A DNA stretch of 64,000 nt from Macrostomum lignano (Eukaryota): positions 62,001 through 126,000 of the forward strand of contig NIVC01000401.1 of the NCBI GenBank assembly GCA_002269645.1. The letters are read 5' to 3'. The notes under the pieces were generated by a model, which made no database searches, was not told the origin of the DNA, and saw only the letters and a program-made list of their open reading frames with translations. Each line of letters opens with the position of its first letter. Position 1 is the first letter of the stretch. A program made the position numbers and the translations under genes. This document shows, piece by piece, positions 7,601 to 48,771 of the stretch.

Positions 7601-7740
7601 TCAGATCCTCGGTAGATCCGACAACCCTCTCAAATCCTCACTGTTCCATTTTTAGTGTTCAGTTGGCTTGCATTTATCCAATAAAGCTGTGTCCTCATTC
7701 TAAATATCTTCAAAATATTCATCATAAATTCTCTTTCTGC

Positions 7741-10133: not shown

Positions 10134-10795
10134 CCGAGAATTTAAATGTAGTTTCTCCTGATATTAATTTATCGCAAACTACTGTTAGTAGACTTAATGA
10201 ACATTTTGCTATAATCTTGTTTTGCGCAAGTATTATTATGTCATAGTGGGTTATAGTTGCAGATGCTTGTTAAAATAGTTTTTGTTCGCTGTTTAACCTG
10301 TCCAGACGGAACGCCCTCGCTGTTTTCTTAGAAACAGGTGTCAAAAATACTAAATAAATTTGGTAACCTTTTTCAACTGGCCTGCTCTGAAAAGATTGAC
10401 TCACTGGCTGTCGCTATTGCATTTTCTGCAAAAAAAGCTTTTTTGACCGTCACCTGGACATTAAAAAACCTGAATTGCTTGTCAATTATTTTAAACAAAG
10501 TGAATAAAGTAACGGTAAATAGCTGTTATTTATTTGTAAAAACACAACAAAACGGCAAAATAACTACAGGAAGAATATACTTGTATGAAGGATTTTTGAA
10601 CATTTTTAAGAGCAAGCAAGGCAATTCATATGCAGTTAGGGAAGCTATACATTCGCCCCTAAGGGGGGCTTTAAAGTACACTAAAAACCTGTTAACATAT
10701 TGAGAAGTTATAACTCAGTGATCATGTAGGAATTTGTGTAGGAAATATAGGCAGACACTCGAAATCCAGCAATATTAAACAAATTTTCTCTTTGA

Positions 10796-11305: not shown

Positions 11306-11953
11306 TGCGTCGCGTGCCAATTTTAAGTGGGACGGGTTTAGTTTAGTTTGGATTTTAAGCTTCTTTAATTCCTTGATTGCCCCGCTCAAGGCTCAATTAA
11401 AAGTCCCGTCCCTCTCCTTTAAGCTAAGTGAACAAAGTTGCCTTATATACGAGCGTAGTTGTTTACTCTTTAATTGCTGGCGTGGTTGGGTGTTGGGGTG
11501 ATATCGAGCCAAAACCCCTCAACCAGCGTCTCCTCAGGGCTCGCTTATCATTGGTTGATGGCTCTACCGCGATCCACCCCTCCCCTTCCCCGTCTAAATG
11601 TACATTTTCAGATTTGTACATTCCCTGCATATAAAGGGAATCAGTGTAGATAAAACGGGCGGGCTGGCTGAGTTCTCAAAGCGTCTCCCACCCGCCTCTA
11701 CGTTAAAACAAACACAAAGCAGTATTCAAATGCATGTAGGTTATAGCGGTATTTTCATTTCTCTATCGAGTTCTAATTTCGTCCTTTTGAAGTTCTAAAT
11801 CTAAAAAATAAGTGCATACGAGCGTATGTAATTCCAGCTCCTCCTGGATTTTTGCATCTTGCATGTAGATGCATAGGGAGGGGGGCTTTCACAATCCCGA
11901 ATTTTACCAGCGTCGCAATCACAACCCCGATAACCAGTGCAGTTTTATGTTGT

Positions 11954-12256
11954 GGGCCTGTCAACTTAAGCTCATAAAGTGGAGCCCGAGTAACTATGTA
12001 CACAAATGATGCGTCATTCTGTTCACAGTGACACCAGGAAGCTGGATTTCGATAATAAGGGACTACTTACTACTTTATGAGCTTAAGTTGACATAATATT
12101 CCCAATCATCCCCTTGCTTGTTCTCCCTTATCCCAATTCCAACTTTCGTCACTTTTGCCAAACTCAACTTCCTGGTGTCAATGTGAACAGAATGACGCAT
12201 CAGTTGTGTACATAGGTTACTCGGGCTCTACTTTATGAGCTTGAGCTGACAGGCCC
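11954..12256. mobile_element. MITE-like element with about 88-bp terminal inverted repeats
   Basis: 11954-12041 (GGGCCTGTCAACTTAAGCTCATAAAG...GACACCAGGAAG) is the near-perfect reverse complement of 12168-12256; a partial third copy lies at about 12070-12093; no convincing TSD. Confidence 0.75.
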
Positions 12257-12272
12257 TTTGAAATGTTGTAAC

Positions 12273-13383
12273 TAGGGAATACAATCCCGGGATACCGAAA
12301 TCCCGGGATTAGGCCCAAATCCCGGGATTCTGAATCCCGGGATTTCGATTATGCCTGAATCCCGGGATTCTAAATCCCGGGATCACACTTGTCCGGGATT
12401 GACCATCGGGATCCCAATCCCGGTTTGAGGATCTGCAGCTGAGCTACTGTCAGGTGAAAATCATAACCCAGTTGGGCTGCTTTGATTTATTAATCTTTTA
12501 AACACGCAGGCTTAGTGAGTTGGCTAGGGCTGCAGGGATACAAAACTGAAGGTGTTGGCATATCGAAGGAGATTTCAGGTGTAATAATTTATGTGCAACT
12601 GTGTACATATGGTACTCGCAGACTAATGTAATTATGTTATTCTAAAACCTGTGCACAGAGCCTAAAGCAATAGAAGCCAATTCCTCATTGTTTCCGATCA
12701 CAGCGCTATAGCTTGCCAGACGGGAGTCAAATAATTGCTCATTTGAGCTCCCCTCTATCTCAAACCCAGCTAAAAAGTCCCCCTCTATGCGAAAGACCTC
12801 ATTCTCAGCACCTCAGCACTGTCAGGACACCTTTGAGATGCCCAGCATAGGGGCGGTGGCAGAACTACATGTACATTAAGCAGACACTACCTTCAAAACT
12901 CCTTGGCCGTAGTTGGGATTAGAACAGTGGGACCTTGCTATCGGACCGCAATCCAAGCTAGCGCGGTTTGCCTCTGGGTGAGGTCTGATCCCCTTCTACC
13001 CTGACATCAGTACCTCGGGTCATAGCTCTGTAAGCTGTCATTCCCCAGGTTACATCGCAATCAAGTGTGATTTTCTTGAGCTGATACTGGCATGTAAAAA
13101 CACGTCTAATACTCCAGTCCGTACATCACACTCCAATTCAGAGTTCACTGTCAGCTTCTTGTTAGCAAAATATTTTATTCTGTTCTATTTAATTATTGAA
13201 AGCCATTTAAAATCAGACTATGTAGATGGCTTCGTAAACCAAAATTGCACCAACAATGATTACAAAATTTTTTAATCACGGGATCCCGGCCCAATTTGTC
13301 GGGATCCCGGGATTGGCAAAGTCCGGGATATCCCGATCCCGAGAATTCCGGGATTGGCAAAACTCGGGATTTTGTATTCCCTA
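12273..13383. mobile_element. Non-autonomous hAT-type DNA transposon, 1111 bp
   Basis: TIRs TAGGGAATACAA(AA)TCCC at both ends; exact 8-bp TSD GTTGTAAC at 12265-12272 and 13384-13391; subterminal ATCCCGGGAT repeats at both ends; no transposase ORF. Confidence 0.9.
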
Positions 13384-26438: not shown

Positions 26439-26870
26439 CTAGCTCCTCGGTCGCTCCTTCTTGCCGCGGAACAGAGCCCACAGCGACACGTTGGCCACCT
26501 TGACAATCTTGAACCGGACGCCGGGGATATCGCCGACGGCGTGGCCGGCCCGGCCAAATCCGGACACCAGCACTTCGTCGTTCTCCTCGATAAAGTTCAA
26601 ACAGCCGTCGTTAGGCACGAAAGCGGTGATCTTCTTGCCATTCTTGATCAGCTGAACTCTGACGCACTTCCTAATGGCACTGTTAGGCTGCTTGGCTTCA
26701 ACGCCGATCTTCTCAACTACGATGCCCTTGGCGTGGGACGCGCCGCCGAACGGGTTGGCCTTCCAACGGGTGCCCAGGTGAGACTTTTTGTAGTCCTTGT
26801 CTGCCCAGCGCTGCTCGCGTCTGTTGTTGCGTAGCTTGCGGGCTGTGCGAATACCGGCCGGCTTGCCCAT
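26439..26870 (-). CDS. RPS23: 40S ribosomal protein S23 (uS12), 143 aa, no CDS intron
   Basis: Near-canonical sequence [13 protein letters not shown]...[23 protein letters not shown]...GDIPGVRFK...KKERPRS; GCCGCCATGG context. Confidence 0.99.
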
Positions 26871-27014: not shown

Positions 27015-28235
27015 AACCCTGACACTACCCGAGAGACCCTGACACACCTCAAGAAACCCTGACACGCCTCAAGAGACCCTGACACACCTCAAGAGACCCT
27101 GACACACCTCAAGAGATTCTGACACTACTCAAGAGACCCTGACACACCTCAAGAGACCCTGACACACCTCAAGAGACCCTGACACGTCTCAAGAAACCTT
27201 GACACTACTCAAGAGACCTTGACACTACTCAAGAGACCCTGACACTCCTCAAGAGACCTTGACACTACTCAAGAGACCCTGACAAACCTCAAGAAACCTT
27301 GACACTACTCAAGAGACCTTGACACTACTCAAGAAACCCTGACAAACCTCAAGAAACCTTGACACTACTCAAGAGACCTTGACACTACTCAAGAAACCCT
27401 GACAAACCTCAAGAAACCTTGACACTACTCAAGAGACCTTGACACTACTCAAGAGACCCTGACAAACCTCAATAAACCTTGACACTACTCAAGAGACCTT
27501 GACACTACTCAAGAGACCCTGACACTCCTCAAGAGACCTTGACACTACTCAAGAGACCCTGACAAACCTCAATAAACCTTGACACTACTCAAGAGACCTT
27601 GACACTACTCAAGAGACCCTGACACTCCTCAAGAGACCTTGACACTACTCAAGAGACCCTGACAAACCTCAATAAACCTTGACACTACTCAAGAGACCTT
27701 GACACTACTCAAGAGACCCTGACACTCCTCAAGAGACCTTGACACTACTCAAGAGACCCTGACAAACCTCAAGAGACCTTGACACTACTCAAGAGACCTT
27801 GACACTACTCAAGAGACCCTGACACTCCTCAAGAGACCTTGACACTACTCAAGAGACCCTGACAAACCTCAAGAGACCTTGACACTACTCAAGAGACCTT
27901 GACACTACTCAAGAGACCCTGACACTCCTCAAGAGACCTTGACACTACTCAAGAGACCCTGACAAACCTCAAGAAACCTTGACACTACTCAAGAGACCTT
28001 GACACTACTCAAGAGACCTTGACACTACCCAAGAGATCCTGACACACCTCAAGAGACCCTAACGATACTCAAGAGACCCTAACGATACTCAAGAGACCCT
28101 AAGGATACTCAAGAGACCCTAACGATACTCAAGAGACCCTGACACTACTCAAGAGACCCTAACGATACTCAAGAGACCCTGACACTACTCAAGAGACCCA
28201 GACACTTACTCATGAGACCCTGACACACCTATAGA
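27015..28235. repeat. 20-bp minisatellite (GACACTACTCAAGAGACCCT)
   Basis: About 60 copies in 20-bp register with 60/120-bp higher-order patterning. Confidence 0.95.
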
Positions 28236-29829: not shown

Positions 29830-32800
29830 CTACTGTTTCTTTGGCTTCCCCTTATCCGGAGCCGTTACGCCACCGCCGCCGTGCCGGATGCCGTAATAGT
29901 CGCTGCTCAGGTAATAATCAGTGACAGATATTCCGCGCTGTCTGCTATGCCGCTTCTTAGCAAAGAATACACACAGGAATACGATGAAAAATGACGACAG
30001 TACCTGCGCAGGGGAGTGGGGCAATCAAAGCTTCATTTTTGTAAACATGAAAAATACTCGTAACTTTGTATCAAGCATTCTTTCCAGGTCCTTTTGTTGG
30101 GGTCACTGTCCCCTTCCAGGTCCTTTTGTTGGGTCACTGTCCCCTTCCAGGTCCTTTTGTTGGGTCACTGTCCCTTTCCAGGTCCTTTTGTTGGGTCACT
30201 GTCCCCTTCCAGGTCCTTTTGTTGGGTCACTGTCCCCTTCCAGGTCCTTTTGTTGGGTCACTGTCCCCTTTCCAGGTCCTTTTGTTGGGTCACTGTCCAC
30301 TTCCAGGTCCTTTTGTTGGGTCACTGTCCCCTTCCAGGTCCTTTTGTTGGGTCACTGTCCCCTTCCAGGTCCTTTTGTTGGGTCACTGTCCCTTTCCAGG
30401 TCCTTTTGTTGGGTCACTGTCCCCTTCCAGGTCCTTTTGTTGGGTCACTGTCCCCTTCCAGGTCCTTTTGTTGGGTCACTGTCCCCTTCCAGGTCCTTTT
30501 GTTGGGTCACTGTCCCTTTCCAGGTCCTTTTGTTGGGTCACTGTCCCCTTCCAGGTCCTTTTGTTGGGTCACTGTCCCCTTCCAGGTCCTTTTGTTGGGT
30601 CACTGTCCCCTTCCAGGTCCTTTTGTTGGGTCACTGTCCCCTTCCAGGTCCTTTTGTTGGGTCAATGTCCCCTTTCCAGGTCCTTTTGTTGGGTCACTGT
30701 CCCCTTCCAGGTCCTTTTGTTGGGTCACTGTCCCCTTCCAGGTCCTTTTGTTGGGTCACTGTCCCCTTCCAGGTCCTTTTGTTGGGTCACTGTCCCTTTC
30801 CAGGTCCTTTTGTTGGGTCACTGTCCCCTTCCAGGTCCTTTTGTTGGGTCAATGTCCCCTTCCAGGTCCTTTTGTTGGGTCACTGTCCCTTTCCAGGTCC
30901 TTTTGTTGGGCCAATGTCCCCTCCCAAGTCCTTTTGTTGGCTCAGTGTCCCTTTTTATAGGTCCTTTTGTTGGGCCAATGTCCCCTCCCAAGTCCTTTTG
31001 TTGGGTCACTGTCCCTTTCCAGGTCCTTTCGTTGGGCCAATGTCCCCTCCCAAGTCCTTTTGTTGGGTCACTGTCCCCTTCCAGGTCCTTTCGTTGGGCC
31101 AATGTCCCCTTCCAGGTCCTTTTGTTGGGTCACTGTCCCCTTCCAGGTCCTTTTGTTGGGCCGCTGTCCCTTTCCCAGTGTTTTGCAGGGCCGCTGACTA
31201 CCATATAGACACGAAGCTAGAGTTCGCGATCCTACTTACCGAGTAGATCACCCAGAGGACAATGTACAGCGTGACCGTTCTTTCAAAAAAGTGCCGACCG
31301 AACTTTAAACAGACAATGGCTTCGGTGATGACAATTGCGCTGTAAGGGATGGATTCACAGACTAACAGTAATATTTCTGACATGCTTGTATAAACGGGCA
31401 AGACTGCAAAAGCTTACACAAATAGCCACAGCTGAGTACCAACGCGTGTAACCAATGGATCCGTGACGTACAGATAGTACTGACTGCAACGTTTTAATTA
31501 CATTACAATAGGTCAGGTGGGATACCAACACACAAATGTCAGAAACTCCATGTCAGGTGGGACACCAACCCAATGTCAGAAACTCTCTGTCAGATGGGAT
31601 ACCAACCCAATGTCAGAAACTCCATGTCAGGTGGGACACCAACCCAATGGCAGAAACTCCCTGTCAGATGGGACACTAACCCAATGTCAGAAACTCTCTG
31701 TCAGATGGGATACCAACCCTATGTCAGAAACTCTCTGTCAGATGGGATACCAACCCAATGTCAAAAACTCCCTGTCAGGAGGGATAACAACCCAATGTCA
31801 GAAACTCCCTGTCAGGTGGGACACCAACCCAATGTCAGAAACTCCCTGTCAGGTGGGACACCAACCCAATGTCAGAAACTCCCTGTCAGGTGGGACACCA
31901 ACCCAATGTCAGAAACTCCCTGTCAGGTGGGACACCAACCCAATGTCAGAACCTCCCCAAAATCGCATACCGGATGCCGGGAGCACTAATTGTGGATATC
32001 AACGCCAGCCTAGCCATAGTGGTCACGTGACCAGGCCGCACAATGAAAATATGCTTCAAAAAGAAGCAATTAAGCTCGGCAATTTGCCACAGTACAACAA
32101 GAATTGAGACGCCAATAACGCGCATAAATGAACTCTCGGGGTCGAGCCAGCGGGTTGGAGTCCAACTGGAAATCAAGGTGTGAAATCTTATAGGACTTAC
32201 AGGTGATAACGACTCAATTAGAAGGTTCATAAATGATTAAATACCTGCCGGGTGTAAACTGAAAGAATGCGCGCTTAATTTTAGCGGAAGTCGAACTCAA
32301 TGACCTGAAAAATTTCGTAGGGACAAAATACTTCACTTTTTTAAATTTGCGTTGAAACTCAGAAGTTAGAACTGAAATAGCTATTAGTCTGTGATAGGGG
32401 CGAGTAGAAAGAGTCTAAAGAAGACTTATCAAAACAGTTTTCAAGATAATAGCAGAAACATTAGGATAATATCTGAAATAATCTTCTATACAATCCCAAG
32501 CATACGATTATCAGGAAATCAACATAATCTCGGAGAGATTATCAAAATAATCTCAGAGATTATCAACATAACCTCAGAGAGATTATCTACATAATCTTAG
32601 AGACGTTGTCAACAATCTTAGAGAGATTATCAACATCTCAGAGAGATTATCAACATCTCAGAGAGATTATCAACATCTCAGAGAGATTATCAACATCTCA
32701 GAGAGATTATCAACATCTCAGAGAGATTATCAACATAATCTCAGAGATTATCAACATAATCTCAGAGATTATCAACATAATCTCAGAGATTATCAACATA

Positions 32801-35800
32801 ATCTCAGAGATTATCAACATAATCTCAGAGATTATCAACATAATCTTAGAGACGTTATCAACAATCTTAGAGATTATCAACATCTCAGAGAGATTATCAA
32901 CATAATCTCAGAGATTATCAACATAATCTCAGAGATTATCAACATAATCTCAGAGATTATCAACATAATCTTAGAGACGTTATCAACAATCTTAGAGATT
33001 ATCAACATCTCAGAGAGATCATCAACAAAACCTATCAGAGAGATTATCAACATAATCTCAGAGTTTATCAACAGAACCTCAAAAGAGATTATCAACATAA
33101 TCTCAGAGTTTATCAACAGAACCTCAAAAGAGATTATCAACATAATCTCAGAGTTTATCCACAGAACCTAGCAGAGAGATTATCACCAGAACCTATCAGA
33201 GAGATTATCAGCAGAACCTATCAGAGGGATTATCAACAGAACCTATCAGAGAGATATCAGCATAGCCTCAGAGATTATTAGCAGAACCTGTCATTAAGAC
33301 GGATAACAAAGCTCACCGAATGCTCTCCCAGTGATAGCTGCGCATTTCCAACCAGCGGCACAGTTGCATTCCAATAAAAATGCCCACCCCGTTGCACACG
33401 AACACGTCTAGAATGACAATGTCCCACCAGCACTCTTGAAAGTTGGGCAATATATGCGAGAATGCCATCTCGGTAATTTCCCAATTGATTGATAGCAGCC
33501 AGGTTAGACCGTAGTGCCTAAGCAATACGGCTTTCATTACCCAGCCAAATAGGTGAGCAACGGCGAATACGTCCAGGTGAGAATAGAGTCTGGACAGAGT
33601 GATTTCGGAGCAATTGGCCGCGTATTCCTGCGTAAGAAGTTTACATACATAGATGATGAAATTAAAAGTACAAAAGCTTTTACAAAGCGTTGCAGTACCA
33701 AGTTTTTCAAAAATCACTCAGAAAATAATAAACAAAACATCTATTTCTAACCCTATATGATAAACGAACACCATCCTTTATAATAGATGGACATCTCAGA
33801 TTATCAGTAAATAATAATAACAATAATACTAATTACACACACCTGCCCCGATTGGGCCAATGTGCAACCCCGACAGCTCAGCCGCAGCTATTGCGTAAGG
33901 CTGCGTACGGCTGTTCAGTCCAAGGACTGGGGGGGGGGGTCACCAAACACACCCTCAATTACCCCAGATAATTGCTGGTATTTTACAGCTGGGTGAACTT
34001 AAGTGTCTTGCTCACAAGGACACAAATTGTTAGAGTGGGATTGGGAATCGAACCCCCGACCTTCAAGCTGAGTCCAATGCTCTAGTCTAACCACTAGGCT
34101 TCAACCCCATACCATATCCATTATCAGTGAACACTCCATATAATAGATGTACGTCTCTGATTTTCAGTGGACACCCTATACACTGTATTAAACGGACACC
34201 TCTGCATTTTCTGCAGACAAAGCCAGCTGATCAATAACTAGCTAAATACCTTATCCAGAATATCATCGTATGTCATATTGGCCAGGTCAGGGTACATCCA
34301 AACCAGTGCCCGCCTGGCGTCCTCATAGCTCAGGAAGCACACAAAGACCATGACAAGAAAGTACAGCACGCTGATGCCTAAAATAAAAAGTATAAAGATT
34401 TCTTGTTCTTGTAATAGCTTATAATGGCTCTATTCTTTAGTTAAAATATTCTAAGAAATTAGAATAGCCAAATTAAATACTGACCAAAAACCACACGCCA
34501 AATGGCTGGATGTGGTCGAATAAATGGCCCTAAAATGAAGAAAAAAAATATATTATTCATATTCCTGAAGTTACAATAAATAGGTACTACAATTATAAAT
34601 CAAACTTACCATTTGGCATAACAAGTATAGAAATGATGAGAAAAACGGTGCATACAGCAATGCTTCCATGCCAAACATCTTCTTTTAGTGTGGTGTCAGT
34701 TCTAAACAAAGGAAATTATTAGTTTGCCTTAATTATAAACACAGCACTATGCATAGTTTATTGATGAATAATAAGTTAGTCCAATTATTTCAGTCATTAT
34801 ATTTTAGTCTAACCTTCCTGGATAGCTTATAATAACAATTAGGATCCATGATACACAGAAGCTTATCAAAAATATGTAATAGACTTTATACTAAAATTTT
34901 GTCTTCTTGTGGTAGCAATAAAGACAAAAATATATTGTAAATGTAGTATATAATAGCACCACTATAAATTAACATGCTTTGTAGTGTAATTTATTTTTAC
35001 AAAAGCCTATTCTTTAAGAAAAGAAATTTTACTTTATGGTATAGCATTGAACATGGATACAACTGGATGCAAAAATGGATACAATTTTTTATATCAAGTA
35101 ATAAAAATGTATAACTTTTTTAATTCAAAGAAGAAACACACTTTCTTTATTTTAATACTGAATTTTGAATTACTAAATTCAATAGTAAGAAGACCAATAA
35201 CTTAATAAGGTGCAATTTTATACCTTATTATATTGAAAAATCTAGGCCCATGCAATCAAGGTATAAGCAAGTTAGTATAAATTAGGGGTTGAATGAATGT
35301 GATCACAATCATAATTAAAATTTATAACCTTTTTTCAAAATCATGATTTCCTTAAAACCCATTCATGACATGAGGTCATGAATTTTTACTTACTTTTTTA
35401 TTTAAATTATAACTTTTCTATTTGATTTACTAAAATAAAAATGAGAAAATGAATGTATAAATCAGCAATGCATTTTAAATTTGTTGACTTGACAGCATTA
35501 CCAAGTATCTATTATCTAATATATAATGTTTTCTTTATTGTTTTGTTATTTTCTACACTTTTAACTTATGAGCTTGTAACACACATATATATATATTGTA
35601 TTATATGTATTATATTATATTATAATAAATGGTGAAAGAAGACAGTGCTGACAATTTAATTATATATAGTGCAATTATAACAGTGTCTATTTGGCATGAA
35701 TTTGGCAGGAATATAATTCAGATTTTGTATAAACATAAAAATAAATATAAATTCATGTTTACAATCAAGATCATGCCTAACTTTGAAAATTTCACAAAAT

Positions 35801-38800
35801 TTCATGCCAGCCAAAGTTTTTTGCTTGTCTAGCCTCTAGTATATATAATGCATATAATGCATTTTCATATATAATTCTATAATTAAAAATGAATTTGGGC
35901 TATTTAAAACATGTTTCAATCTAAGCCCTATGAAAAAAAACATTCAAAATTCATAATTGCATTTCTTTATAAAGTCTGAACTGGTTCTAACTAGTTTGTA
36001 ATCAGTTCAAAAATGGAACATACTTTATAAAGTTGGAATTTATATTTTGGAAAAAAAATTCTTAAGATCTTATCATTGACATTAACATCCACTTATCCAA
36101 ATGTTTGCCAACTTAGGTTCAAGTTGTCATTGTTAGTGCAACATTTGAGCGTAGCTTAATGAAAAATTAGATAATAAAATTAAAACACCTTTAATTTTTT
36201 TTAATTAAAAACTTTTGCATCTATCATTTGTCATCTATCAGCCATTGGCATTAGAAATTTATGTGTTTAATAAAAATATATGCAATTATAAATAAAGGGA
36301 CTTTTAAATCTATAAACATAGTCCAGCAGCTAGCTAGAATCCATAGATTCAGAGATTTCATCTATAGAACCCTAATTGAAAACTTCAGTTCAAGCATTAT
36401 TTTTTGAAGTTTAATTATTTGTCTTATCCTAAACCTAGTTCCAAAACTTGACCCTAAACCCAACCTGACCAAGAACCCCAAATATCCCTAGGTAAAATTA
36501 CCTTACACCTATATGTGAGAAATAAAGAATAAAGGCAAAAGATATTGGGTATGTACAACCACCTAATGATATACAAACATAGTCTGGCTTGTTAGTGCAC
36601 ATGTACTTAGATGTGCATATCTGGCTTATTTGGGGATTGGGGTTTAGTGCTGCAACATGTGTGTGCTTAAGTTGGTTATACTTACCCCAACTTTGGCAAT
36701 AAAAATATTGATATAAGCCTGTGAGATCTCCTTACAACTTGTTATTCACTGCAACTCAACCCATGGTATTACACAAAGAATGTTATGATAGCCAAAATGA
36801 AATTTTTTCCACTATCTATATGCTCAAATAAGTATAAAATAAGAGTACTTGAGGCCTTGTATATAAAATTGCATAGGCTTAAACCAATCTTAAATAAGCA
36901 ACTTGCAAATCATGATGCCAGTGCCTTCCTTAGAATATTCTAGGTATATACTTGTGCAGCCTTCTTGAACTTTAGGTACATAAAATATTTCCAATTTTCC
37001 AATTTTTCTGAACCTTTTGCCAGAGTCTTAGAGGCTGTCCAAAATGATAATAAAGCAAAAAACTACAAAAAATTACCCTCAGAGGTAACAGGAGCTCGAT
37101 TTGTTAATCTCTTATATAACTAGTTAGTAATTTGATCCAAGCAGTTTCGGAGAATTGTGTATTTGAAAGTTGAACTTTTTTAGAATCATAACTTTCTAAT
37201 GTAAATATTTTACAAAATTTGATGAATTCATTCTAAAAAAACATTTAGAGGGTTCAAATTTTATCTCTGAAAAAATAATGTCTATTCTACTTTTTTCCAC
37301 TCAATTTGTTATAATGCAACAAGAGTGCCATATCAGTTTACTTTTTAAAATAAATGCTAACTAATGGTTTGCCACCCACCCTCACCACCTGCTTTTTGAT
37401 TCGCTGTTGTTCTTTCATTGTTGATGACTATTAGCTGAACATTCTTTACTTGTTTACTTATACTAATTTCTACTAATCTGCATTGTCTCTATTTTGAAGG
37501 TAACTATAGCTGCTAATATCAATTAGTTTTGATAAGATTATAATTTTTTCTCCATGGTTGTATTTTTGATAAATTATTGAATTTTTTATTTGAACTTCAT
37601 TTCTAGGACCCCTTTTAGTCTTTGAATTTATCTACATAATCTTTAATAGACCTCTATGCCTCTATTAAAGTTTAGCTATATAAAATCTATCCCCATGAAG
37701 ATTCTCCCTACCCTAAAATCCCACATTCCCCATGCCCCAGTTGTTGACAGTTGTCAGCCCCACCCCCCAAGACCTCCCAGTCTCCGAATTTATCTACCTG
37801 ATCTTCAATAGACTTCCATGCCTCTATTGAAGTTTAGGTATATAAAATAAATCCCCATGAAGATTCTCCCTACCCTAACACTTTCCATTCCCTATGATGG
37901 TAGTTGTCAGCCCCCCCCCCCTGAGACTTGCCTCCTAACCCCGTCAGTCTTTGAATTTATCTACCTAATCTTCAATAGACCCCTATACCTCTATTGAAGT
38001 TTAGGTACATAAAATCAACATAAAATCTACATAATCTTTAATAGACCTCCATGCCTCCATTAAAGATGAAGAAGATTCCATGAAGAATCTCCCCACCCTA
38101 AAACCCTCATTCCCTATACCCTGGTAGTTGGCTTTAAGCTACAAAAAAATGAAGCTTAAATTTGAAATAAGCACTATCAAAAACCTTTATAAAGACAAAA
38201 TTATGATCCTATTGAAGCTACAATTATTTTATCTACCTAAAGTTCAAGAAGGCCACTTGTGCTCATCTTAATCTTTTTTCTCTCTATCTATATATTTTTC
38301 AATTTTATCAACACACTTTCATTTTAATTTTTAAATAAAAATAAATAAACAAATAAATTGTTACTAATTTTTTGTAGTCTAACAATGCTTAATGCAAGAT
38401 AAAATATTTCATATAACAAAAAATGATGGTGCTTAGGTTTTTAATTTTGCTTTTTATCAGACACACGACTTTGTTATAAAACATTTTTATATATTTCAAA
38501 TTAAAAAATCTCACTAGACATGCTTGGGCGCAACCTAAAGATTCACCTGGCCATTTCTATTGGCAATATACACATAAGTCGCTATTGGATGGAATATTAG
38601 TCACGTGACTGCTCTCAGCCAATAGCAACTTACATGTGTGTCTTGCCAGTAGAAATGGCTTAGTGATTCCCAAGGTTGTGCATGTATATCACTGGACCCC
38701 CTTGCTATAATGATAGTATTATATATTTATTACTTATTATTTTAGAAAACACTTAGAAGAGAATAAATTGAAGTAATAATTCCTTAAGAAGTAGGTCTAG

Positions 38801-39238
38801 TATATGTCCAACCATTTGATATTATTAGAGAACAAACCAATAATAAAAAATATTAGATAGATAAATTATTTTTAAATTAGGATACCTTATACTAATACTA
38901 ATATTATAATAGTAATACCTAAGTATTATATAACTTTTTTATATTGCTATAAACCATAAAAAACACACATACCTGCCAAGTGCCAAATATATTAATCCAC
39001 AAATTATACAAAAAAGTAGACTCAATGTATGGGGCTTATAAAAGAATTCAATTGTAATATTGTCAACTTTATGGTTTTCAATAAGCTTTGCAAAGTGACA
39101 CCTTTCTTCTTCACTTTTGCTAACACTGTCAGTGTCACCTACATTTAATTTTGATTTTTCTAGCTTCTGCCTAGACCTACTTAAGCCTGTTTCATAAACC
39201 TCATTAGTACTTTCATTAAGTTCATTGGTAGCTTCCAT
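29830..39238 (-). CDS. PTDSS1: Phosphatidylserine synthase 1 (PSS1), about 478 aa; exons 39238-38973, 34701-34610, 34529-34485, 34377-34250, 33627-33317, 32304-32245, 32165-31971, 31483-31418, 31339-31240, 30003-29830
   Basis: Motifs [102 protein letters not shown]. All nine introns are GT-AG with consistent phases; total 1437 nt. Confidence 0.93.
30080..31175. repeat. 31/32-bp minisatellite (TTCCAGGTCCTTTTGTTGGGTCACTGTCCCC) filling PTDSS1 intron 9
   Basis: About 35 copies inside intron 30004-31239. Confidence 0.95.
31510..31955. repeat. 37-bp minisatellite (GTCAGGTGGGACACCAACCCAATGTCAGAAACTCCCT) filling PTDSS1 intron 7
   Basis: About 12 copies inside intron 31484-31970. Confidence 0.95.
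32520..33290. repeat. 20/21-bp minisatellite (AGAGATTATCAACATAATCTC) in PTDSS1 intron 5
   Basis: About 35 copies inside intron 32305-33316. Confidence 0.9.
33810..34108 (-). mobile_element. tRNA-derived SINE in PTDSS1 intron 4
   Basis: Minus strand reads A-box-like AGCCTAGTGG, B box GGTTCGATTCC, then a CORE/Meta-SINE-like TGTGTCCTTGTGAGCAAGACACTT, ending in a (TTA)n-type tail. No intact tRNA cloverleaf or acceptor stem. Confidence 0.8.
37615..38110. repeat. Old diverged tandem repeat of about 165 bp (3-4 copies) in PTDSS1 intron 1
   Basis: GAATTTATCTAC...AATAGAC...CCTCTATT.AAGTTTAG...CCATGAAGATTCTCCCTACCCTAA recurs at about 37620, 37785 and 37950, with a partial fourth copy. Confidence 0.75.
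38520..38690. mobile_element. Palindromic MITE-like element (arms of about 40-65 bp, central AGTCACGTGACT)
   Basis: GCCATTTCTATTGGCAATATACACATAAGTCGCTATTGG (from 38550) pairs with CCAATAGCAACTTACATGTGTGTCTTGCCAGTAGAAATGGC (to 38659). Confidence 0.65.
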
Positions 39239-39299
39239 TATATTTGGCAAAAAACTACAACTTAAACCTTGAAAATGGAATCCAGAACAACAAAAACTC

Positions 39300-40560
39300 T
39301 GTAAATATAGGTTTAGTCAAGCGAACTTCAAATATTTTACAAATTATACATAGAAATGATGTTATATGTGTTAGGTGTATTGTATTATAATACTTTCTGA
39401 CAATTAAAGAAAAATGAAAAACTAGACACAAAGTCCTTTATACACAATATATACCCTCTTAGTCTTAGGCGTCCTAGTCGCTATCTACTTCAATTTTATT
39501 GATATTCATTATTGTACACAGCATCACGTATTAGAAAAATTAATGCTGGTCCACTTTTTTCGAATTATGTTTTCGTCTGCTAATTAATTTTATTTAAATA
39601 AAATATAAAAACTCGTTGCTATTCTTAACAAAGCTGTAATTTTAATTATCAAAGTGGCAACAGGAGTAGTAATAAATGTGGTCAAAAAAATTGTCCGACA
39701 AGCTGTAAGTTTGGTTGAAAGAGTGACTTTAGATATTGTTGAAGAAAGTTCTGAAAAGTACTTTTAAAAGTGTTCAGTAGCGGACACAGAAAAATTGTTG
39801 AGGGGTGGGGGGCAAGCTAATACCATGCAATTACAACACAATATCAGAAAATATACCTTGCATAGTTACAGGCCATAAATATGACAATTTTTTGGGCACG
39901 GGCTGATCGAGGAGGAAAGTACAGGCTAATCGGATCCTAACTCAATAGGGGAATTGCCATTCCTTATTAGCAGTCCATTCGATTCATCTTTTACATGGAT
40001 CTAAAGCTTTTCATTTAAGCCTTGAGCCGTGAAATTATCGAAACTTCCGACGCAGACGCAATCAAGTTACCATCAATGCTGGCTGCTTCTGACCTGGCTG
40101 CTGTAAAAATCCTAGGTAATATAAGTGTGTAAATACCAAACACAGTGAAAGCCCATGCGCGCTATCGATAAAGGACTTGCAAAAGTGTGTTAATATGCTA
40201 ATATTTAATTTTTTAGGGTGATGGTACTTGCTGTACTAGGCGCATTCTAACACGGAACCAGATCTTATACATTATACAAAATTAGCTGGAACATCAAACA
40301 AACCCGGAATTTTTTCAAGAAACGTCAAATTCAAACTCATCTTTTTGTAGTATAAATCCTGGAAAGTTGTGACAAACTATTCAAGAGTTCCGTAAAATAA
40401 GGAAGTAAATTAGATTTTATTATACATATACATGCTTTTGATTCTTGACTGCAGAGAATAACAATCATTAGCGTACTACTTAACGTTTTCTGCTAGATGC
40501 AATGCACCGTTTTGCATTTCTTAGACTGTTAATGTAATTGATAAACTACCAATTGAATAA
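39300..40560. promoter_or_regulatory. Putative bidirectional promoter region between head-to-head PTDSS1 and USP12/46
   Basis: Lies between divergent start codons (39238 minus; 40849 plus) and retains CpG dinucleotides that are nearly absent in both flanks. TSS positions not determinable. Confidence 0.5.
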
Positions 40561-40848
40561 CCATAGCATCTTCAACAAATACAATTTATCTAAGCTTTGC
40601 CAACTTATTTTAGTGTATTTTCTTTTATTGTAGTAAGGCAAAGCCTAATTATCTTTAACTGACTGTAATCAATTGCGCTTCCTGTTCATGTTTGCTAAAC
40701 TTATTCTTGACTTTGTTGCTATTGCTATTGGCAAAAAGCAACAATTTACTAATCATATAGTTCTACTGAAGTGAAAGTTCCAATTCAAGTTGTTTTGGAA
40801 CAATTATTTCATTTTAGTTGGTATTTTCTCCATTATTAATAACCACAC

Positions 40849-43800
40849 ATGCAATTCTTCTGCTTGAGAATGGTAAGTTTCTTATATAACTGTTTTATTT
40901 TTTAGCCTTTGATGATTATCATAGTATCATTTTGGATTGGAATCCTTAAATTAAAAAATCAAGGATCTCTTAATAAATTAGACTTGAAATTGATTGATTC
41001 TATGCCACATTTAGGAAGGTGTCACATGTATGAGATGCACTTAAATTTGGCAACAAACAAATATGGTGACAGAAATTTTATATGGACAAATTTGGGGAAA
41101 GCAAATTCAGCCACAATCTAGGAAAATTTGAGAACATGCCAACACATCCTTTTATAGCTAAAGAGTCCCAAAGATTGTACAAAGCTGCCCAATCTTAAAT
41201 TAATAAACATTTCTTAGAAAAAACTTTTAAAACTCATAAGGATAAATGATAAATAAAACAAGCTCAATTAAAAAAGAAAGCTAATATGCATTGAAGAATA
41301 CCATTATACTAAATGAATTATCCAAATTATATATAATTGTTTTTCCTTCATTAATCATTGCCATATTTGCCTAGATTGTTGCCAAATTTGCTTTTGCCAA
41401 ATTGGTCCATTGACAATTGTCAATCTTTGTTACTAAATTTGTTTGTTATCAGATTAGTCAGTCAGTACTTATAAGCTATATATATACAAAGATATTTCAA
41501 TAAATTTTTGATTATATCTTATATGCTATGTTCCTATTATATAGAAGCCAACCAGGATGGCAATCTTTGCATGAAAAGTTTGGAACAAAAAGTTGGGCGC
41601 AATTTTTTCGCACAAGTTTTTTACCCATGAATGCGCAATTTTTTGCCACTTGAATTTCTTAGCAACTATTTAACAATGTTTTATTAAAGTTTAAATAAAT
41701 CTTAAAAAATAAATAATATTATTCTTTTTTAGTTTAATATAGTTCCCAGTAGCTTTGTTTTTCAATTTGCAATAACTTTGTTTTACTGTAACAACTGCAA
41801 TATTCAAAATTTAAATGACATTATGCAAGATTTCTTAGAATATTAAGCTGCGCGCACATAAGCTTTTTAAAGTTGCACAAGTTTGCTAGAAATATGTGCG
41901 CAACTACGCAAGTTTTTGTTAGCGCGCACAGAACATGTCTAGGATTTTGTACAAAGATTCCATCCTGGGAAGCCAATAACCATTATCATGGACAGTGGCT
42001 AGTGCCAATTGGCCCTTGATAGTATAGATGTAGTCTTATATGCTGTATAGTTTAGTGTATAAAAAGGGATGTCTAGCGCTGTTTAGATGGCTAAAATAGG
42101 ATATAAAGCTAAAATACAAATTAGTATACTAAGCCTTAACATTTATTATTTATAAATGTATAGCTAGAAAGCCCTAGTGTATAACATTGCTAAAAATCTA
42201 GTCAAATATGGAATTATCAATAGTTAAAATAATAGATCCTTTTTGTAGCTTTTGTATATGCTTTTTAATTTAAAATCATACATGCGCAATTGCTAGCTGA
42301 CTTGGCCAATCTGGCCACTATCAATTGTGGTGAATTAGAGCTAAGTCTCAAAAATTCCCCCTAAAAATATAGACATAGTACTAATTAGATTATGGGGCAT
42401 TTAGAAATAATAAGATAGTCATAGACAGTTACTTTTGCCATTTATCCAAAATTGCAATAATTTTTGCTTTAAGGTTTTTTTAAGTAAGTGGCATTTTTTC
42501 AAAAAGTAAGTTGCATGGCTAATGTAAATCATGAAGGTTGTACATATATGTTTAAAACTCTGTTTTTTAGCTTACCTTAAAAATTGTCAAAATAAATTTG
42601 CCAAAACTAAGTTCAACTAAATTAAAACTATTTGATATAGGTAGGTATAAATGAATATTGCTAGTTTCTAAGTGTAAGGAGCTCTTAAGTCCCTAAAATT
42701 TAGCATCTAAGCAATGTGAGATTTTTAATGCAATGTCCATGCTGTGGTTGGGTGGTAAGAGCTAATGATAAGATATTATTTTTCACTTTCAAGAGGGAGC
42801 TCTAAGGTCCATGCATGCATTTAAAAACTTAAGCAATAGAGTTTTAATGCCATATGTATGTTATGGTTGGGTGGATAAATGAAGCCAATAGAAAAGCCAC
42901 CTAGCATTTGCTATTATCAAAGAAGGCCAGATTGTAAAAAGAGGCTTCCTAGAAACCAACTGATAAGCAAGCCATTACTCTCACAGATGTTAAGTGATCA
43001 TAGTTTAGTGAACTTATCAAAATGATACCTTGTATTTTTTCTAATGCTCTTTTTTATTAGTGATTTGCTTCTAAGTCATAAAGAGGAATAGATTAGAAAT
43101 TCAAATATCCTTTTCATATATATCTATACCCTTTAATATATATAATTAAATTCTTCTTCCAAAGTGCTTAGAAATAGTAATGCTTTGCATATTTTTTTCC
43201 TTCAGGGTCAAAGTGGTTCACAATTAGAAAAGGAGCTGGCATCATCACTCAATGAACATTATTTTGGACTAGTAAATGTAAGTGCCATTTTCCTAACTGT
43301 ACTTTATCTTTTGTATCTCACACTGCTAAATGTATGTCACTATTGGCTATGGGCATTTGAGACAGACAGACAGAAGCGATTTATGACTTGTGTGTGTGTG
43401 TTGCCAGTAACAGCCACCTTAATTGGAAAGTTGCATTTCTGTGCATTTTAATTGGCTCTAGATAGTTTATTGGAATATTATTTTTAAGTGTAAAAAGACA
43501 GGTAGAGGGGCTGTCTCTAGACTCACCAACAGGGCAGGTTGGGGGCTGTCTCTAGACTCACCAACAGAGCAGGTAGAGTCAGTGGCTGGCAGTGACTCAC
43601 CAACAGTGAGCAGATAGAGTCAGTGGCTGGCAGTGGCTCACCAACAGTGAGCAGGTGGAGTCAGTGGCTGGCAGTGACTCACCAACAGTGAGCAGATAGA
43701 GTCAGTGGCTGGCAGTGGCTCACCAACAGTGAGCAGATAGAGTCAGTGGCTGGCAGTGGCTCACCAACAGTGAGCAGATAGAGTCAATGGCTAGCAGTGG

Positions 43801-46800
43801 CTCACCAACAGTGAGCAGATAGAGTCAGTGGCTGGCAGTGGCTCACCAACAGTGAGCAGATAGAGTCAGTGGCTGGCAGTGGCTCACCAACAGTGAGCAG
43901 ATAGAGTCAATGGCTAGCAGTGGCTCACCAACAGTGAGCAGATAGAGTCAGTGGCTGGCAGTGGCTCACCAACAGTGAGCAGATAGAGTCAGTGGCTGGC
44001 AGTGGCTCACCAACAGTGAGCAGATAGAGTCAGTGGCTGGCAGTGGCTCACCAATGTAAAAGGCAGAGCAGGGAGTGTCTTTAGTAAAGAACAAGCTGTT
44101 TCACAAATGTCTGTACTTACACCCCTTTCCCTGACCCAGTTCGGCAACACCTGCTACTGCAACTCGGTGCTACAGGCGCTATACTACACAATGTTTCGCG
44201 AGCGGGTCTTGGTGTACAAGCAGCAGACCAAAGGCGGCAAGAAGGACTCTCTATTAACCGCATTAGCCGATTTATTTCACAGCATCGCCTCGCAGAAGCG
44301 CAAAGTTGGCACGTTGGCGCCTAAGAAATTTATTCAAAAATTGAAACGCGAAAACGAAGCGTTCGACAACTTTCAACAGCAGGACGCGCACGAGTTTTTC
44401 AATTATTTAATAAATCATATTGCCGATATACTTGTCGAAGAGCGTAAAGCTCAACAAAGCCAGGCTGGCCAAGGCTCCGGCGGATTGCGCGGCTCGCATT
44501 CAAAAGCGGCAGCAGCTGCAGCAGCCGCCGCCGCAGCAGCAGCAGCGGCTAATGCTGGCTCGGGCGAAGGTTTGACAGGAGACTCAACTGAGCAGCCGTC
44601 AACCTTTGTCCACGAAATATTTCAGGGCACTCTGACTAATGAGACGCGCTGTCTTAACTGCGAAAATGTAAGCCATTGGTTTCTTATTGCTGTGGAAGTA
44701 AGCGGTTCTTAATGTAGCTTTGCTAACCCCACTGTGTCCTTCGGTGGGGCGCCACTACCCTCCACTGTGTCCTTCGGTGGGGCGCCGCTACTCTCCACTG
44801 TGTCCTTCGGGGCGGCGCTACCCTCCACTGTGTACTTCGGTGGGGCGCCGCTACCCTCCACTGTGTCCTTCGGTGTGGCGCCGCTACCCTCCACTGTGTC
44901 CTTCGGTGGGGCGCCGCTACCCTCCACTGTGTCCTTCGGGGCGCCGCTACCCTCCACTTTGACTTCGGGGCGCCGCTACCCTCCACTGTGTCCTTCGGGG
45001 CGCCGCTACCCTCCATTGTGTACTTCGGTAGGGCGCCGCTACCCTCCACTGTGTCCTTCGGTGGGGCGCCGCTACCCTCCACTGTGTCCTTCGGTGGGGC
45101 GCCGCTACCCTCCACTGTGTCCTTCGGTGGGGCGCCGCTACCCTCCACTGTGTACTTCGGTAGAGCGCCGCTACCCTCCACTGTGTCCTTCGGTGGGGCG
45201 CCGCTACCCTCCACTGTGTCCTTCGGGGCGCCGCTACCCTCCATTGTGTACTTCGGTAGGGCGCCGCTACCCTCCACTGTGTCCTTCGGTGGGGCGCCGC
45301 TACCCTCCACTGTGTCCTTCGGTGGGGCGCCGCTACCCTCCACTGTGTCCTTCGGTGGGGCGCCGCTACCCTCCACTGTGTACTTCGGTAGAGCGCCGCT
45401 ACCCTCCACTGTGTACTTCGGTAGGGCGCCGCTACCCTCCACTGTGTCCTTCGGGGCGCCGCTACCCTCCACTGTGACTTCGGGGCGCCGCTACCCTCCA
45501 CTGTGTACTTCGGTGGGGCGCCGCTACCCTCCACTGTGTACTTCGGTAGGGCGCCGCTACCCTCCACTGTGTCCTTCGGGGCGCCGCTACCCTCCACTGT
45601 GTACTTCGGTGGGGCGCCGCTACCCTCCACTGTGTACTTCGGTAGGGCGCCGCTACCCTCCACTGTGTCCTTCGGGGCGCCGCTACCCTCCACTGTGACT
45701 TCGGGGCGCCGCTACCCTCCACTGTGTACTTCGGTGGGGCGCTGCTACCCTCCACTGTGTACTTCGGTAGAGCGCCGCTACCCTCCACTGTGTCCTTCGG
45801 GGCGCCGCTACCCTCCACTGTGACTTCGGGGCGCCGCTACCCTCCACTGTGTACTTCGGTGGGGCGCTGCTACCCTCCACTGTGTACTTCGGTAGGGCGC
45901 CGCTACCCTCCACTGTGTCCTTCGGGGCGCCGCTACCCTCCACTGTGTACTTCGGTGTGGCGCCGCTACCCTCCACTGTGTACTTCGGTGTGGCGCCGCT
46001 ACCCTCCACTGTGTACTTCGGTGGGGCGCTGCTACCCTCCACTGTGTACTTCGGTGTGGCGCCGCTACCCTCCACTGTGTCCTTCGGGGCGCCGCTACCC
46101 TCCACTGTGTACTTCGGTGTGGCGCCGCTACTCTCCACTGTGTCCTTCGGGGCGCCGCTACCCTCCACTGTGTACTTCGGTGTGGCGCCGCTACCCTCCA
46201 CTGTGTTTTTCGGGGCGCCGCTACCCTCCACTGTGTCCTTCGGGGCGCCGCTACCCTCCACTGTGTACTTCGGTGTGGCGCCGCTACCCTCCACTGTGTC
46301 CTTCGGGGCGCCGCTACCCTCCACTGTGTCCTTCGGGGCGCCGCTACCCTCCACTGTGTCCTTCGGGGCGCCGCTACCCTCCACTGTGTCCTTCGGGGCG
46401 CCGCTACCCTCCACTGTGTACTTCGGTGTGGCGCCGCTACCCTCCACTGTGTACTTCGGTGGGGCGCTGCTACCCTCCACTGTGTACTTCGGTGTGGCGC
46501 CGCTACCCTCCACTGTGTCCTTCGGGGCGCCGCTACCCTCCACTGTGTACTTCGGTGTGGCGCCGCTACCCTCCACTGTGTTTTTCGGGGCGCCGCTACC
46601 CTCCACTGTGTCCTTCGGGGCGCCGCTACCCTCCACTGTGTCCTTCGGTGGGGCGCCGCTACCCTCCACTGTGTCCTTCGGGGCGCCGCTACCCTCCACT
46701 GTGTCCTTCGGGGCGCCGCTACCCTCCACTGTGTACTTCGGTGTGGCGCCGCTACCCTCCACTGTGTCCTTCGGGGCGCCGCTACCCTCCACTGTGTCCA

Positions 46801-48771
46801 ATTTCAATAGAATCTGTTCAACATTTACTGTTATTTGCATGTATTGAAAGGCTCAATGCGCTCCAGAATATAAATTATGTATAAATTATTTTTCCAGGTC
46901 CGACAGAAAGACGAAAACTTTCTAGACCTCTCCGTAGACATCGAGCAAAACTCCAGCTTACTCAGCTGCTTAAAATGCTTCTCTAATTTAGAAACAATGC
47001 AGCACGAGAATAAGTACTTTTGCGAATTCTGCTCCTCAAAGCAGGAAGCTACGAAAAGAATGAAGCTAAAAAAGCTGCCCCTAGTATTGGCTTTGCACCT
47101 GAAGCGATTCAAATTTATTGAACAAATGTCCCGTCACGTGAAAGTTAATTCTCGGGTTGTATTTCCTCTGGAGCTAAGCCTGTCGTCAACATTTGATGAG
47201 AGCAATCCAGAGCGAGTGTACGACCTGGTGTCTGTAGTTGTCCACTGCGGCTGCGGCCCGAACAGGGGGCATTACATCACCATTGTGAAGTCGCACGGCC
47301 TCTGGCTTCTATTTGACGATGATATTGTTGAGGTAAGCTATCGGTCTGAAACCTGTGTAGCATACCCCTGGATGAGCAGGGAGTAGCATAACACCTGGAT
47401 GAGCAGGGAGTAGCATAACACCTGGATGAGCAGGGAGTAGCATAACCCCTGGATGAGCAGGGAGTAGCATAACCCCTGGATGAGCAGGGAGTAGCATAAC
47501 ACCTGGATGAGCAGGGAGTAGCATACCCCCTGGATGAGCGGGGAGTAGCATACCCCCTGGATGAGCAGGGAGTAGCATACCCCCTGGATGAGCAGGGAGT
47601 AGCATACCCTCTGGATGAGCAGGGAGTAGCATACCCCCTGGATGAGCAGGGAGTAGCATACCCCCTGGATGAGCAGGGAGTAGCATACCCCCTGGATGAG
47701 CAGGGAGTAGCATAACACCTGGATGAGCAGGGAGTAGCATACCCCCTGGATGAGCAGGGAGTAGCATACCCCCTGGATGAGCAGGGAGTAGCATACCCCC
47801 TGGATGAGCAGGGAGTAGCATACCCCCTGGATGAGCAGGGAGTAGCATACCCCCTGGATGAGCAGGGAGTAGCATAACACCTGGATGAGCAGGGAGTAGC
47901 ATAACCCCTGGATGAGCAGGGAGTAGCATACCCTCTGGATGAGCAGAAAGTAGCATACCCCCTGGATGAGCAGGGAGTAGCATAACCCCTGGATGAGCAG
48001 GGAGTAGCATAACCCCTGGATGAGCAGGGAGTAGCATACCCCCTGGATGAGCAGAAAGTAGCATACCCCCTGGATGAGCAGGGAGTAGCATAACCCCTGG
48101 ATGAGCAGGGAGTAGCATAACCCCTGGATGAGCAGGGAGTAGCATAACCCCTGGATGAGCAGGGAGTAGCATAACCCCTGGATGAGCAGGGAGTAGCATA
48201 CCCCTGGATGAGCAGGGAGTAGCATACCCCCTGGATGAGCAGGGAGTAGCATACCCCTGGATGAGCAGGGAGTAGCATACCCCCTGGATGAGCAGGGAGT
48301 AGCATACCCCTGGATGAGCAGGGAGTAGCATACCCCTGGATGAGCAGGGAGTAGCATAACACCTGGATGAGCAGAGAGTAAGTAGGCTACCTGTCTGTCA
48401 ATTTGAGACACAAAAATGAAATAAAAGAGAGACGAGCTCGTAATTGCGTCCTCGCCCATTCGCTGTCTCAACCAACCTCCCCCCCTCTCTTGGCCTTGCA
48501 GAAAATCGACCCCTCCCATATTGAGGAATTCTACGGCCTGGGCTCCGACTCGCCTCGCAGTAACGACAGCGGCTATTTGCTGTTCTACCAGGCCAGGGAC
48601 CCATCGGCCCCGCCTCAGCCTACCACTGCCGTCCCGGCCGCTAGCGCTGCTAGCACTGCAACAACCACAACCGCTACTGGCAGTAGTACTGCGACAACAA
48701 CCGCTGGCAATTCTGGCCACAGTAATCAGGGTTCGAATTCGGCCAGACCGGCTAGAGGTGACCGGGCGTAG
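40849..48771 (+). CDS. USP46: Ubiquitin-specific protease USP12/USP46 ortholog, about 442 aa; exons 40849-40872 (tentative), 43206-43277, 44140-44667, 46898-47332, 48502-48771
   Basis: GSQLEKEL...NEHYFGLVN|[14 protein letters not shown] (Cys box), [23 protein letters not shown]...FDDD (His/Asp box), GYLLFYQ. All introns are phase 0 GT-AG. The first exon MQFFCLRM|G mirrors the conserved M|G junction but is less certain. USP12 and USP46 cannot be distinguished. Confidence 0.9.
41552..41968. mobile_element. hAT-type MITE, 417 bp, in USP12/46 intron 1
   Basis: TIRs CCAGGATGG(C)AATCTTTG; exact 8-bp TSD GAAGCCAA at 41544-41551 and 41969-41976; internal TGCGCA subterminal motifs. Confidence 0.85.
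43500..44055. repeat. 41-bp minisatellite (GAGCAGATAGAGTCAGTGGCTGGCAGTGGCTCACCAACAGT) in USP intron 2
   Basis: About 12 copies inside intron 43278-44139. Confidence 0.95.
44725..46800. repeat. 30/33-bp minisatellite (CTTCGG[TG]GGGCGCCGCTACCCTCCACTGTGTC) filling USP intron 3
   Basis: About 65 copies inside intron 44668-46897. Confidence 0.95.
47355..48380. repeat. 27-bp minisatellite (TGGATGAGCAGGGAGTAGCATACCCCC) filling USP intron 4
   Basis: About 38 copies inside intron 47333-48501. Confidence 0.95.

Follow-up and report, generated by a model that had tools for sequence, protein, structure and literature searches.

The standard pattern among invertebrates is methylation of gene bodies in which promoters are spared and the observed/expected ratio of CpG dinucleotides (o/e) is bimodal, and flatworms are usually cited as having lost DNA methylation. 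We analyzed a 64,000-nucleotide (nt) stretch of the genome of the flatworm Macrostomum lignano, hereafter the window (line DV1, assembly Mlig_3_7, contig NIVC01000401.1; coordinates are those of the window unless another locus is named), in which CpG is depleted at the 5′ ends of two divergent genes, a phosphatidylserine synthase gene (PTDSS) and a USP12/46-type ubiquitin hydrolase gene (USP). The annelid Owenia fusiformis is reported to have gene-body methylation (PMC11292947), and the flatworm Schistosoma mansoni is without DNMT1 and DNMT3 (PMC9246332). Passages in PMC11292947, PMC9246332 and PMC10658182 state that M. lignano keeps both DNMT1 and DNMT3 and has low-level 5-methylcytosine (5mC); the low level in adult animals is mentioned in passages of the same three sources and of PMC5327563, all of them citing Wasik 2015, the one bisulfite study of this species. 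According to a 2022 review, there was no free-living flatworm with a described methylation pattern.

The PTDSS orthologues of O. fusiformis and S. mansoni have the profiles expected for species with and without methylation enzymes, respectively: o/e is 0.9 to 1.2 over the promoter and the first ~3 kb of the annelid gene and then 0.2 to 0.56 over the remaining 30 kb and beyond, and it is flat, at 0.57 to 0.95, over the Schistosoma gene. The USP12/46 gene of Capitella teleta, a compact gene with a uniform o/e of 0.54 to 0.66, was uninformative as a control. The M. lignano profile is unlike both PTDSS controls. It is deep and short and lies at the 5′ end only, close to a mirror image of the annelid profile. 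Here we show that the depletion is specific to CpG, that its limits can be located and that it recurs at other M. lignano loci. With a probability of about 0.7, we read it as a footprint of 5mC that was long present in the germline and restricted to the 5′ gene bodies of PTDSS and USP12/46.

CpG depletion at the 5′ ends of PTDSS and USP12/46

The region between positions 34,650 and 39,250 has 10 CpGs in 4,601 bp (GC content [GC] 0.293, o/e 0.10), in agreement with the dozen or so counted in a preliminary description of this DNA. The same description had called 40.6 to 43.5 kb similarly poor apart from a young mobile element, and the counts bear this out, since 9 of the 13 CpGs between 40,600 and 43,500 fall within an element at 41,541-41,979. 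Over the whole depleted stretch on the USP side (40,677-44,139; o/e 0.12), 9 of 12 CpGs are in this ~440-bp element, which is bounded by inverted repeats. The two start codons lie 1,631 bp apart rather than the 1.3 kb first given, but the number of about 28 CpGs given with it was close: the interval has 30, and 28 of these are in 39,470-40,676. Relative to the non-coding background of the window (o/e 0.93), the PTDSS side has 8 CpGs where 74 are expected (Poisson P = 1e-22) and the USP side 3 where 49 are expected (Poisson P = 1e-17). In each gene the depletion takes in the first exon(s) and intron(s), over a length of ~4.8 kb for PTDSS and ~3.5 kb for USP. The features of the locus are as follows (GC3, GC content at third codon positions; aa, amino acids).

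29830..39238, minus strand: PTDSS, coding span; 10 coding exons, 478 aa
34250..34701, minus strand: PTDSS exons 2 to 4 and two short introns; outer edge of the depleted domain
34702..38972, minus strand: PTDSS intron 1, 4.27 kb; 10 CpGs in 4,268 bp, GC 0.289, o/e 0.11
38973..39238, minus strand: PTDSS coding exon 1, 266 nt; GC 0.33, GC3 0.25, 0 CpG; within the depleted domain
39470..40676, no strand: CpG-retaining stretch between the divergent genes, presumed shared promoter region; 28 CpGs in 1,207 bp, GC 0.34, o/e 0.80
40849..48771, plus strand: USP12/46-type ubiquitin hydrolase gene, coding span; 435 aa, conserved MG... N-terminus
40873..43205, plus strand: USP intron 1, 2.3 kb, AT-rich, array-free; 11 CpGs
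41541..41979, no strand: element with terminal inverted repeats, ~440 bp; 9 CpGs, GC 0.31, o/e 0.84
43206..43277, plus strand: USP coding exon 2, 72 nt; GC3 0.17, 0 CpG; within the depleted domain
43278..44139, plus strand: USP intron 2; one CpG (43,377); contains a 41-bp array at 43,499-44,054
44140..44667, plus strand: USP exon 3, the first CpG-rich exon; 42 CpGs, o/e 1.23, GC3 0.55

The PTDSS exons were placed by tblastn with the M. lignano proteins P0121 and P0122. The joined coding sequence has no stops, its 478 aa equal the length of PAA83859.1, and PF03034 is recorded for the product in Pfam; six more exons follow exon 4, down to the stop at 29,830. Exons 3 to 5 of USP match UniProt A0A1I8I802 of M. 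lignano at 100% identity, the two exons beyond exon 3 ending at 48,771, and the ATG is at 40,870. Over window positions 49,238-24,001, the GenBank sequence of contig NIVC01000401.1 (assembly GCA_002269645.1) is 100% identical. Several existing models of these genes differ from ours. GenBank starts USP12/46 at an upstream ATG at 40,849 (MQFFCLRM-), where relatives start with MG-, and annotates two of three PTDSS copies as partial, without exon 1. The UniProt model A0A1I8I802 omits exons 1 and 2 and the latter half of exon 3, and the UniProt PTDSS model A0A1I8IDS3 is without a 60-nt exon (32,304-32,245). USP12/46 exon 3 (44140-44667) encodes a run of 15 alanines in a Gly/Ser/Ala-rich insertion, in the variable linker of the catalytic domain.

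For comparison with the flanks, the window was cut at its tandem arrays into non-array segments. All 29 segments outside the domain have an o/e of 0.74 to 1.19, and low values occur only in the two segments that contain the domain (o/e 0.09 to 0.12 in the domain itself), as the preliminary description had anticipated for this check. AT-richness alone is insufficient as an explanation, because AT-rich segments elsewhere in the window (GC 0.28 to 0.31) keep an o/e of 0.90 to 1.18. In the raw sliding-window profile, the other places of low o/e are wholly due to CpG-poor array units.

We then compared symmetrised dinucleotide odds ratios between the domain introns, minus arrays and the inverted-repeat element, and other AT-rich non-coding DNA of the window. 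The CG ratio is 0.09 in the domain introns versus 0.93 in the background. TG/CA is raised (1.18 versus 1.05), giving the TpG/CpA excess that had been predicted, and so is CC/GG (1.29 versus 0.94); all other dinucleotides are like the background. If the missing CpGs had become TpG or CpA, the TG/CA ratio would be near 1.2, with which the observed value agrees. The TA ratio is unchanged (0.92 versus 0.93), and the spectrum is therefore not like that of repeat-induced point mutation (RIP). The GC is 0.284 in the domain introns and 0.342 in the background.

The coding exons follow the same division. CpG o/e is 0.24 in PTDSS exons 1 to 3 versus 1.00 in exons 4 to 10, and 0.00 in USP exons 1 and 2 versus 1.04 in exons 3 to 5. 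The preliminary description had noted A/T-ending codons within the domain and GC3-rich exons downstream, and this contrast is strong in both genes: GC3 is 0.25, 0.29 and 0.27 in PTDSS exons 1, 2 and 3 versus 0.50 to 0.70 in exons 4 to 10 (Fisher P = 2e-11), and 0.17 in USP exon 2 versus 0.55 to 0.60 in exons 3 to 5 (Fisher P = 2e-4). As the exons of one gene are equally old, the difference is regional, which excludes a simple effect of sequence age. The description had also called the downstream exons CpG-rich, which is correct. The downstream non-array introns offer scarce sequence and have an o/e of 0.51 to 0.72, a mild deficit at most.

Boundaries were located by likelihood changepoints with support intervals of 2 log-likelihood units. 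The outer changepoint on the USP side, at 44,141 (support 44,111-44,164), takes o/e from 0.07 to 1.13 and coincides with the exon 3 acceptor (44,140). The corresponding changepoint for PTDSS falls at 34,646 (support 33,908-34,818), with an o/e of 0.07 inside and 0.63 outside, and across the 107-bp intron between exons 3 and 4 GC3 rises from 0.27 to 0.70. The inner changepoints are at 39,469 and 40,676, so that depletion starts ~170 to 230 bp upstream of each start codon. A depletion limited to the first 3 to 5 kb of each gene and ending sharply, as originally proposed, is thus what we find.

The element in USP intron 1 interrupts the depletion: it holds 9 of the 11 CpGs of that intron, the other two being at 42,077 and 42,285. 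Its terminal repeats of 17/18 nt, CCAGGATGG(C)AATCTTTG, were recovered by a gapped comparison (an ungapped inverted-repeat search gave none), and it has recurring GCGCA...TTTTT motifs. It had been described as a young miniature inverted-repeat transposable element. The terminal inverted repeats and the kept CpGs fit that label, but it is plausible only, as no second copy was found in the M. lignano sequence examined. Either the element inserted recently, or it is protected and stays unmethylated.

Comparison with described patterns and recurrence at other M. lignano loci

The M. lignano locus resembles invertebrate gene-body methylation in that the promoter region is spared, the transcribed DNA is CpG-depleted with an excess of TpG/CpA, and DNMT1 and DNMT3 are, according to the literature, encoded in the genome. 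It differs in that the depletion stops before the 3′ body of the gene, where the Owenia orthologue has the whole-body pattern; relative to Owenia PTDSS, the depletion is also deeper (0.07 to 0.12), restricted to 3.5 to 4.8 kb and sharply ended. Arthropods with 5′-confined exon methylation offer a second likeness, as the M. lignano signal, with CpG loss taken as the proxy, is restricted in some genes to the first few exons and spares later ones. Arthropod methylation is described as exon-enriched, however, whereas the first introns at this locus (o/e 0.09 to 0.11) are at least as depleted as the 5′ exons (0.00 to 0.24), and the block is several kilobases long.

A CpG-retaining stretch between divergent genes with CpG-poor flanks recalls the bidirectional CpG-island promoters of vertebrates. 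Unlike a vertebrate CpG island (GC > 0.5, o/e > 0.6), though, this stretch has a GC of 0.34, and unlike vertebrate genomes the background, represented by the other non-array DNA of the window (o/e ~1), is undepleted, so that depletion is the local exception. Fungal RIP, with its loss of CpA/TpG, gain of TpA and dependence on duplicated DNA, differs on each count: TG/CA is in excess, TA is unchanged and the blocks are unique sequence. The preliminary description spoke of an unusual mosaic architecture, which is half right. Full inclusion of the first intron, the depth of the depletion and its sharp, exon-linked edge are unusual; spared promoters and bimodal CpG o/e are standard in invertebrates.

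An older PTDSS paralogue of M. lignano (locus L002, 65% protein identity) has the same layout. Its exon 1 has no CpG and a GC3 of 0.31, its intron 1 is 4.4 kb long, array-free and mostly at GC 0.27 to 0.35 and o/e 0 to 0.3, and CpG and GC3 (0.62 to 0.86) recover from exon 2 or 3 onward. Only exons 1 and 2 of the two paralogues align. Intron 1 is unalignable, and the layout must therefore be maintained or re-created by a process rather than inherited as sequence. Just within the otherwise depleted intron 1 of the paralogue lies a 470-bp CpG-rich islet with 24 CpGs (L002 10437-10904), which is analogous to the element in USP intron 1 and may act as an alternative promoter or have inserted recently.

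We ran one uniform caller on independent stretches of M. lignano DNA, 152 kb in all, namely the window, L002, the RPS23 loci L005 and L009, and L013, the region upstream of a MAP3K gene that extends past the left end of the window; a protein search with a chimeric kinase+OTU+DSPc query added only one new M. lignano locus. Seven depleted regions were called, all with a GC of 0.28 to 0.35 and an array fraction of 0 to 0.11. Both arms of the window and the region in L002 include 5′ coding exons. Three others, at RPS23 in L005 and L009 and at MAP3K in L013, lie 0 to 1 kb before an annotated ATG and could be introns of the 5′ untranslated region (UTR) or outrons. The seventh (L009 564-2,540) overlaps a transposon-like open reading frame (ORF). 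No sequence similarity was found between the depleted blocks, nor a repeat family shared by them. Among genes, the block pattern is a mosaic.

Probable germline methylation and its alternatives

The first exon(s) and intron(s) of PTDSS and USP12/46 would have been CpG-methylated over the long term in the heritable lineage, that is, in neoblasts or the germ line. Deamination of 5mC would have turned ~90% of the CpGs of the domain into TpG or CpA and, by the same process, would have drawn third codon positions toward A or T. The 1.2 kb between the genes, presumably their promoter region, would have remained unmethylated and kept its CpGs, and methylation would end abruptly within each gene, in keeping with later exons at o/e ~1.0 and later introns at 0.5 to 0.7. 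With an o/e near 0.1, CpG must have been strongly hypermutable here over a long time. Among three near-identical assembled copies of the locus, CpG differs from TpG or CpA at 5 of 46 CpG positions in the domain versus 10 of 320 outside. The direction is right for hypermutability, but the comparison is underpowered and the direction of change unassignable, which makes it suggestive only. That 5mC is the cause, and that both genes are constitutively expressed in M. lignano, is what we infer from the sequence. In other animals, PTDSS, USP12/46, RPS23 and MAP3K2/3 have broad expression.

Several observations weigh against this interpretation. Methylation is read from sequence footprints at a handful of loci. 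The three regions upstream of RPS23 and MAP3K precede the annotated ATG in genes whose 5′ UTR exons are unannotated, so that they may or may not lie inside the transcript, and the block on the transposon-like ORF of L009 means that gene 5′ ends are not the only DNA to be depleted. There is no block at the LTV1, OTU, AAA ATPase and EF-hand genes, at a gene for a 627-aa protein or at the RPS23 copy of the window. The weakest quantitative point is the low GC3. Values of 0.17 to 0.29 are below the prediction from one round of CpG loss, and extra AT pressure or long-term CpG flux has therefore to be assumed.

A compositional domain without methylation is one alternative. AT-biased mutation or a lack of GC-biased gene conversion might have shaped the 5′ parts, with the array-rich downstream parts recombining more and so reaching high GC3 and CpG. 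The GC3 of the 5′ exons matches the GC of the introns (0.29), as in neutral AT-rich drift, the downstream parts of the genes are full of minisatellites, and the GC of the domain introns falls slightly under what simple CpG loss from 0.342 predicts. We nevertheless consider this unlikely, because the equally AT-rich segments of the window retain their CpGs and because only CG, TG/CA and CC/GG deviate, whereas a general AT bias gives no ten-fold deficit specific to CpG.

Methylation might instead have been aimed at old transposon-derived or heterochromatic sequence that fills the first introns, and not at the 5′ gene body itself. The first introns do carry old dispersed repeats, seen as self-hits, and the depleted block of L009 overlaps an intact transposase-like ORF of 635 aa with a weak DUF4218 match. 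Yet the depleted blocks have no mutual similarity, the ORFs of the domain gave no Pfam match, and coding exons (PTDSS exons 1 to 3 and USP exon 2) are depleted too; the sole clear mobile-looking element of the domain, at 41,541-41,979, is the part that retains its CpGs. Such targeting thus appears improbable. Nor did the domain introns yield hidden genes or RNAs, as no Pfam, Rfam or tRNA match was found in them.

Selection against CpG in the 5′ transcript or in first-intron regulatory DNA, for instance through CpG-reading factors or cryptic initiation, would account for a depletion that follows transcript structure, with its edge at a splice acceptor, and for a layout conserved between old PTDSS paralogues. 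It would, however, have to act uniformly over more than 4 kb of unalignable intron, and the excess of TG/CA fits mutational conversion. We know of no such CpG-avoidance mechanism in flatworms and regard selection as very unlikely. An assembly artefact, chimeric join or foreign AT-rich insert, which the abrupt change of composition at 44,140 might have suggested, can be dismissed, because independently assembled contigs (L003 and L004) carry the same locus with the same CpG profile at 96 to 100% identity to the window, making three contigs with one structure, and because native conserved exons inside the block splice in frame with exons outside it.

Under the germline 5mC interpretation, a more specific arrangement can be put forward tentatively. 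Methylation of promoter-proximal exons and introns alike may run, at near-complete levels, from about the transcription start through the whole first intron and end at a defined splice junction; such an arrangement is undescribed in spiralians, would mirror in reverse the 5′-spared, whole-body pattern of the annelid orthologue, and may be the sign of chromatin that keeps minisatellite arrays from expanding. We think this possible but doubtful.

If the footprint is general, the reported low-level 5mC would sit in short 5′ domains; as these are short and have lost ~90% of their CpGs, this would explain the low global level. The distribution along genes would then be opposite to that of the annelid orthologue, and the abrupt change of codon usage within single genes would be tied, in a testable manner, to the first intron and to a boundary in chromatin. 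M. lignano is the accessible exception among flatworms, for which transgenesis and RNA interference exist. A practical consequence is that codon usage and GC content are strongly unlike between the 5′ and 3′ exons of one M. lignano gene.

Tandem arrays, assembly copies and neighboring loci

Tandem arrays make up 43% of the window (Tandem Repeats Finder; 34 merged arrays with units of 10 to 445 bp) and are mostly intronic and intergenic. The preliminary description stated that the two longest introns of the domain are without fresh minisatellites, and so they are: the sole array of PTDSS intron 1 is a degenerate repeat of 162 bp x 2.4 (37,617-38,015), and USP intron 1 has none. It also pointed to a CpG-free unit in the first array on the USP side. 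The 41-bp array of USP intron 2 indeed has 0 CpG, with a TG/CA o/e of 1.95, but this is uninformative, because 17 of the 34 arrays of the window are CpG-poor wherever they are located, and the CpG-rich other half is likewise spread regardless of position.

The 9.5-kb stretch of the domain has the lowest array fraction of all stretches of equal length (0.10 versus a mean of 0.43), but only about six such stretches can be placed independently in the window, and a CpG-rich coding stretch of 4.7 kb (7,641-12,306; o/e 1.14) is equally array-free. The depleted blocks at other loci are all array-free, some of these loci being array-poor overall. The suggestion of the preliminary description that methylation may suppress array expansion is not supported by these figures, and the array poverty of the domain may reflect methylation, regulatory constraint on first introns or chance.

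Over window positions 31512-44712, the alignment with L003 and L004 is a mosaic of identity. All three copies are 100% alike over 37.5 to 42.5 kb, and in other stretches varying pairs agree while the third copy is 2 to 4% off. Such a mosaic points to exchange between the duplicated chromosome copies of line DV1, by recombination or gene conversion.

Identical RPS23 proteins are encoded at several loci (window 26442-26870, L005 10001-11192 and L009 10001-10432). The copies of the window and of L009 are intronless, and that of L005 has an intron of 0.76 kb, partly filled by arrays. In place of the CpG-depleted unique block of L005 and L009, the window copy has a CpG-poor array of 1.2 kb (27,016-28,226). 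At L009 1440-3347, an intact, unannotated ORF of 635 aa has a match to DUF4218 (transposase-associated) below the Pfam cut-off; lying in an AT-rich, CpG-depleted block, it is possibly a methylated DNA transposon. The array-free stretch at 7641-12306 of the window contains an LTV1-type ribosome-biogenesis gene (Pfam LTV is recorded for the L013 copy) and, on the opposite strand, an ORF with a THAP domain (10,799-11,392).

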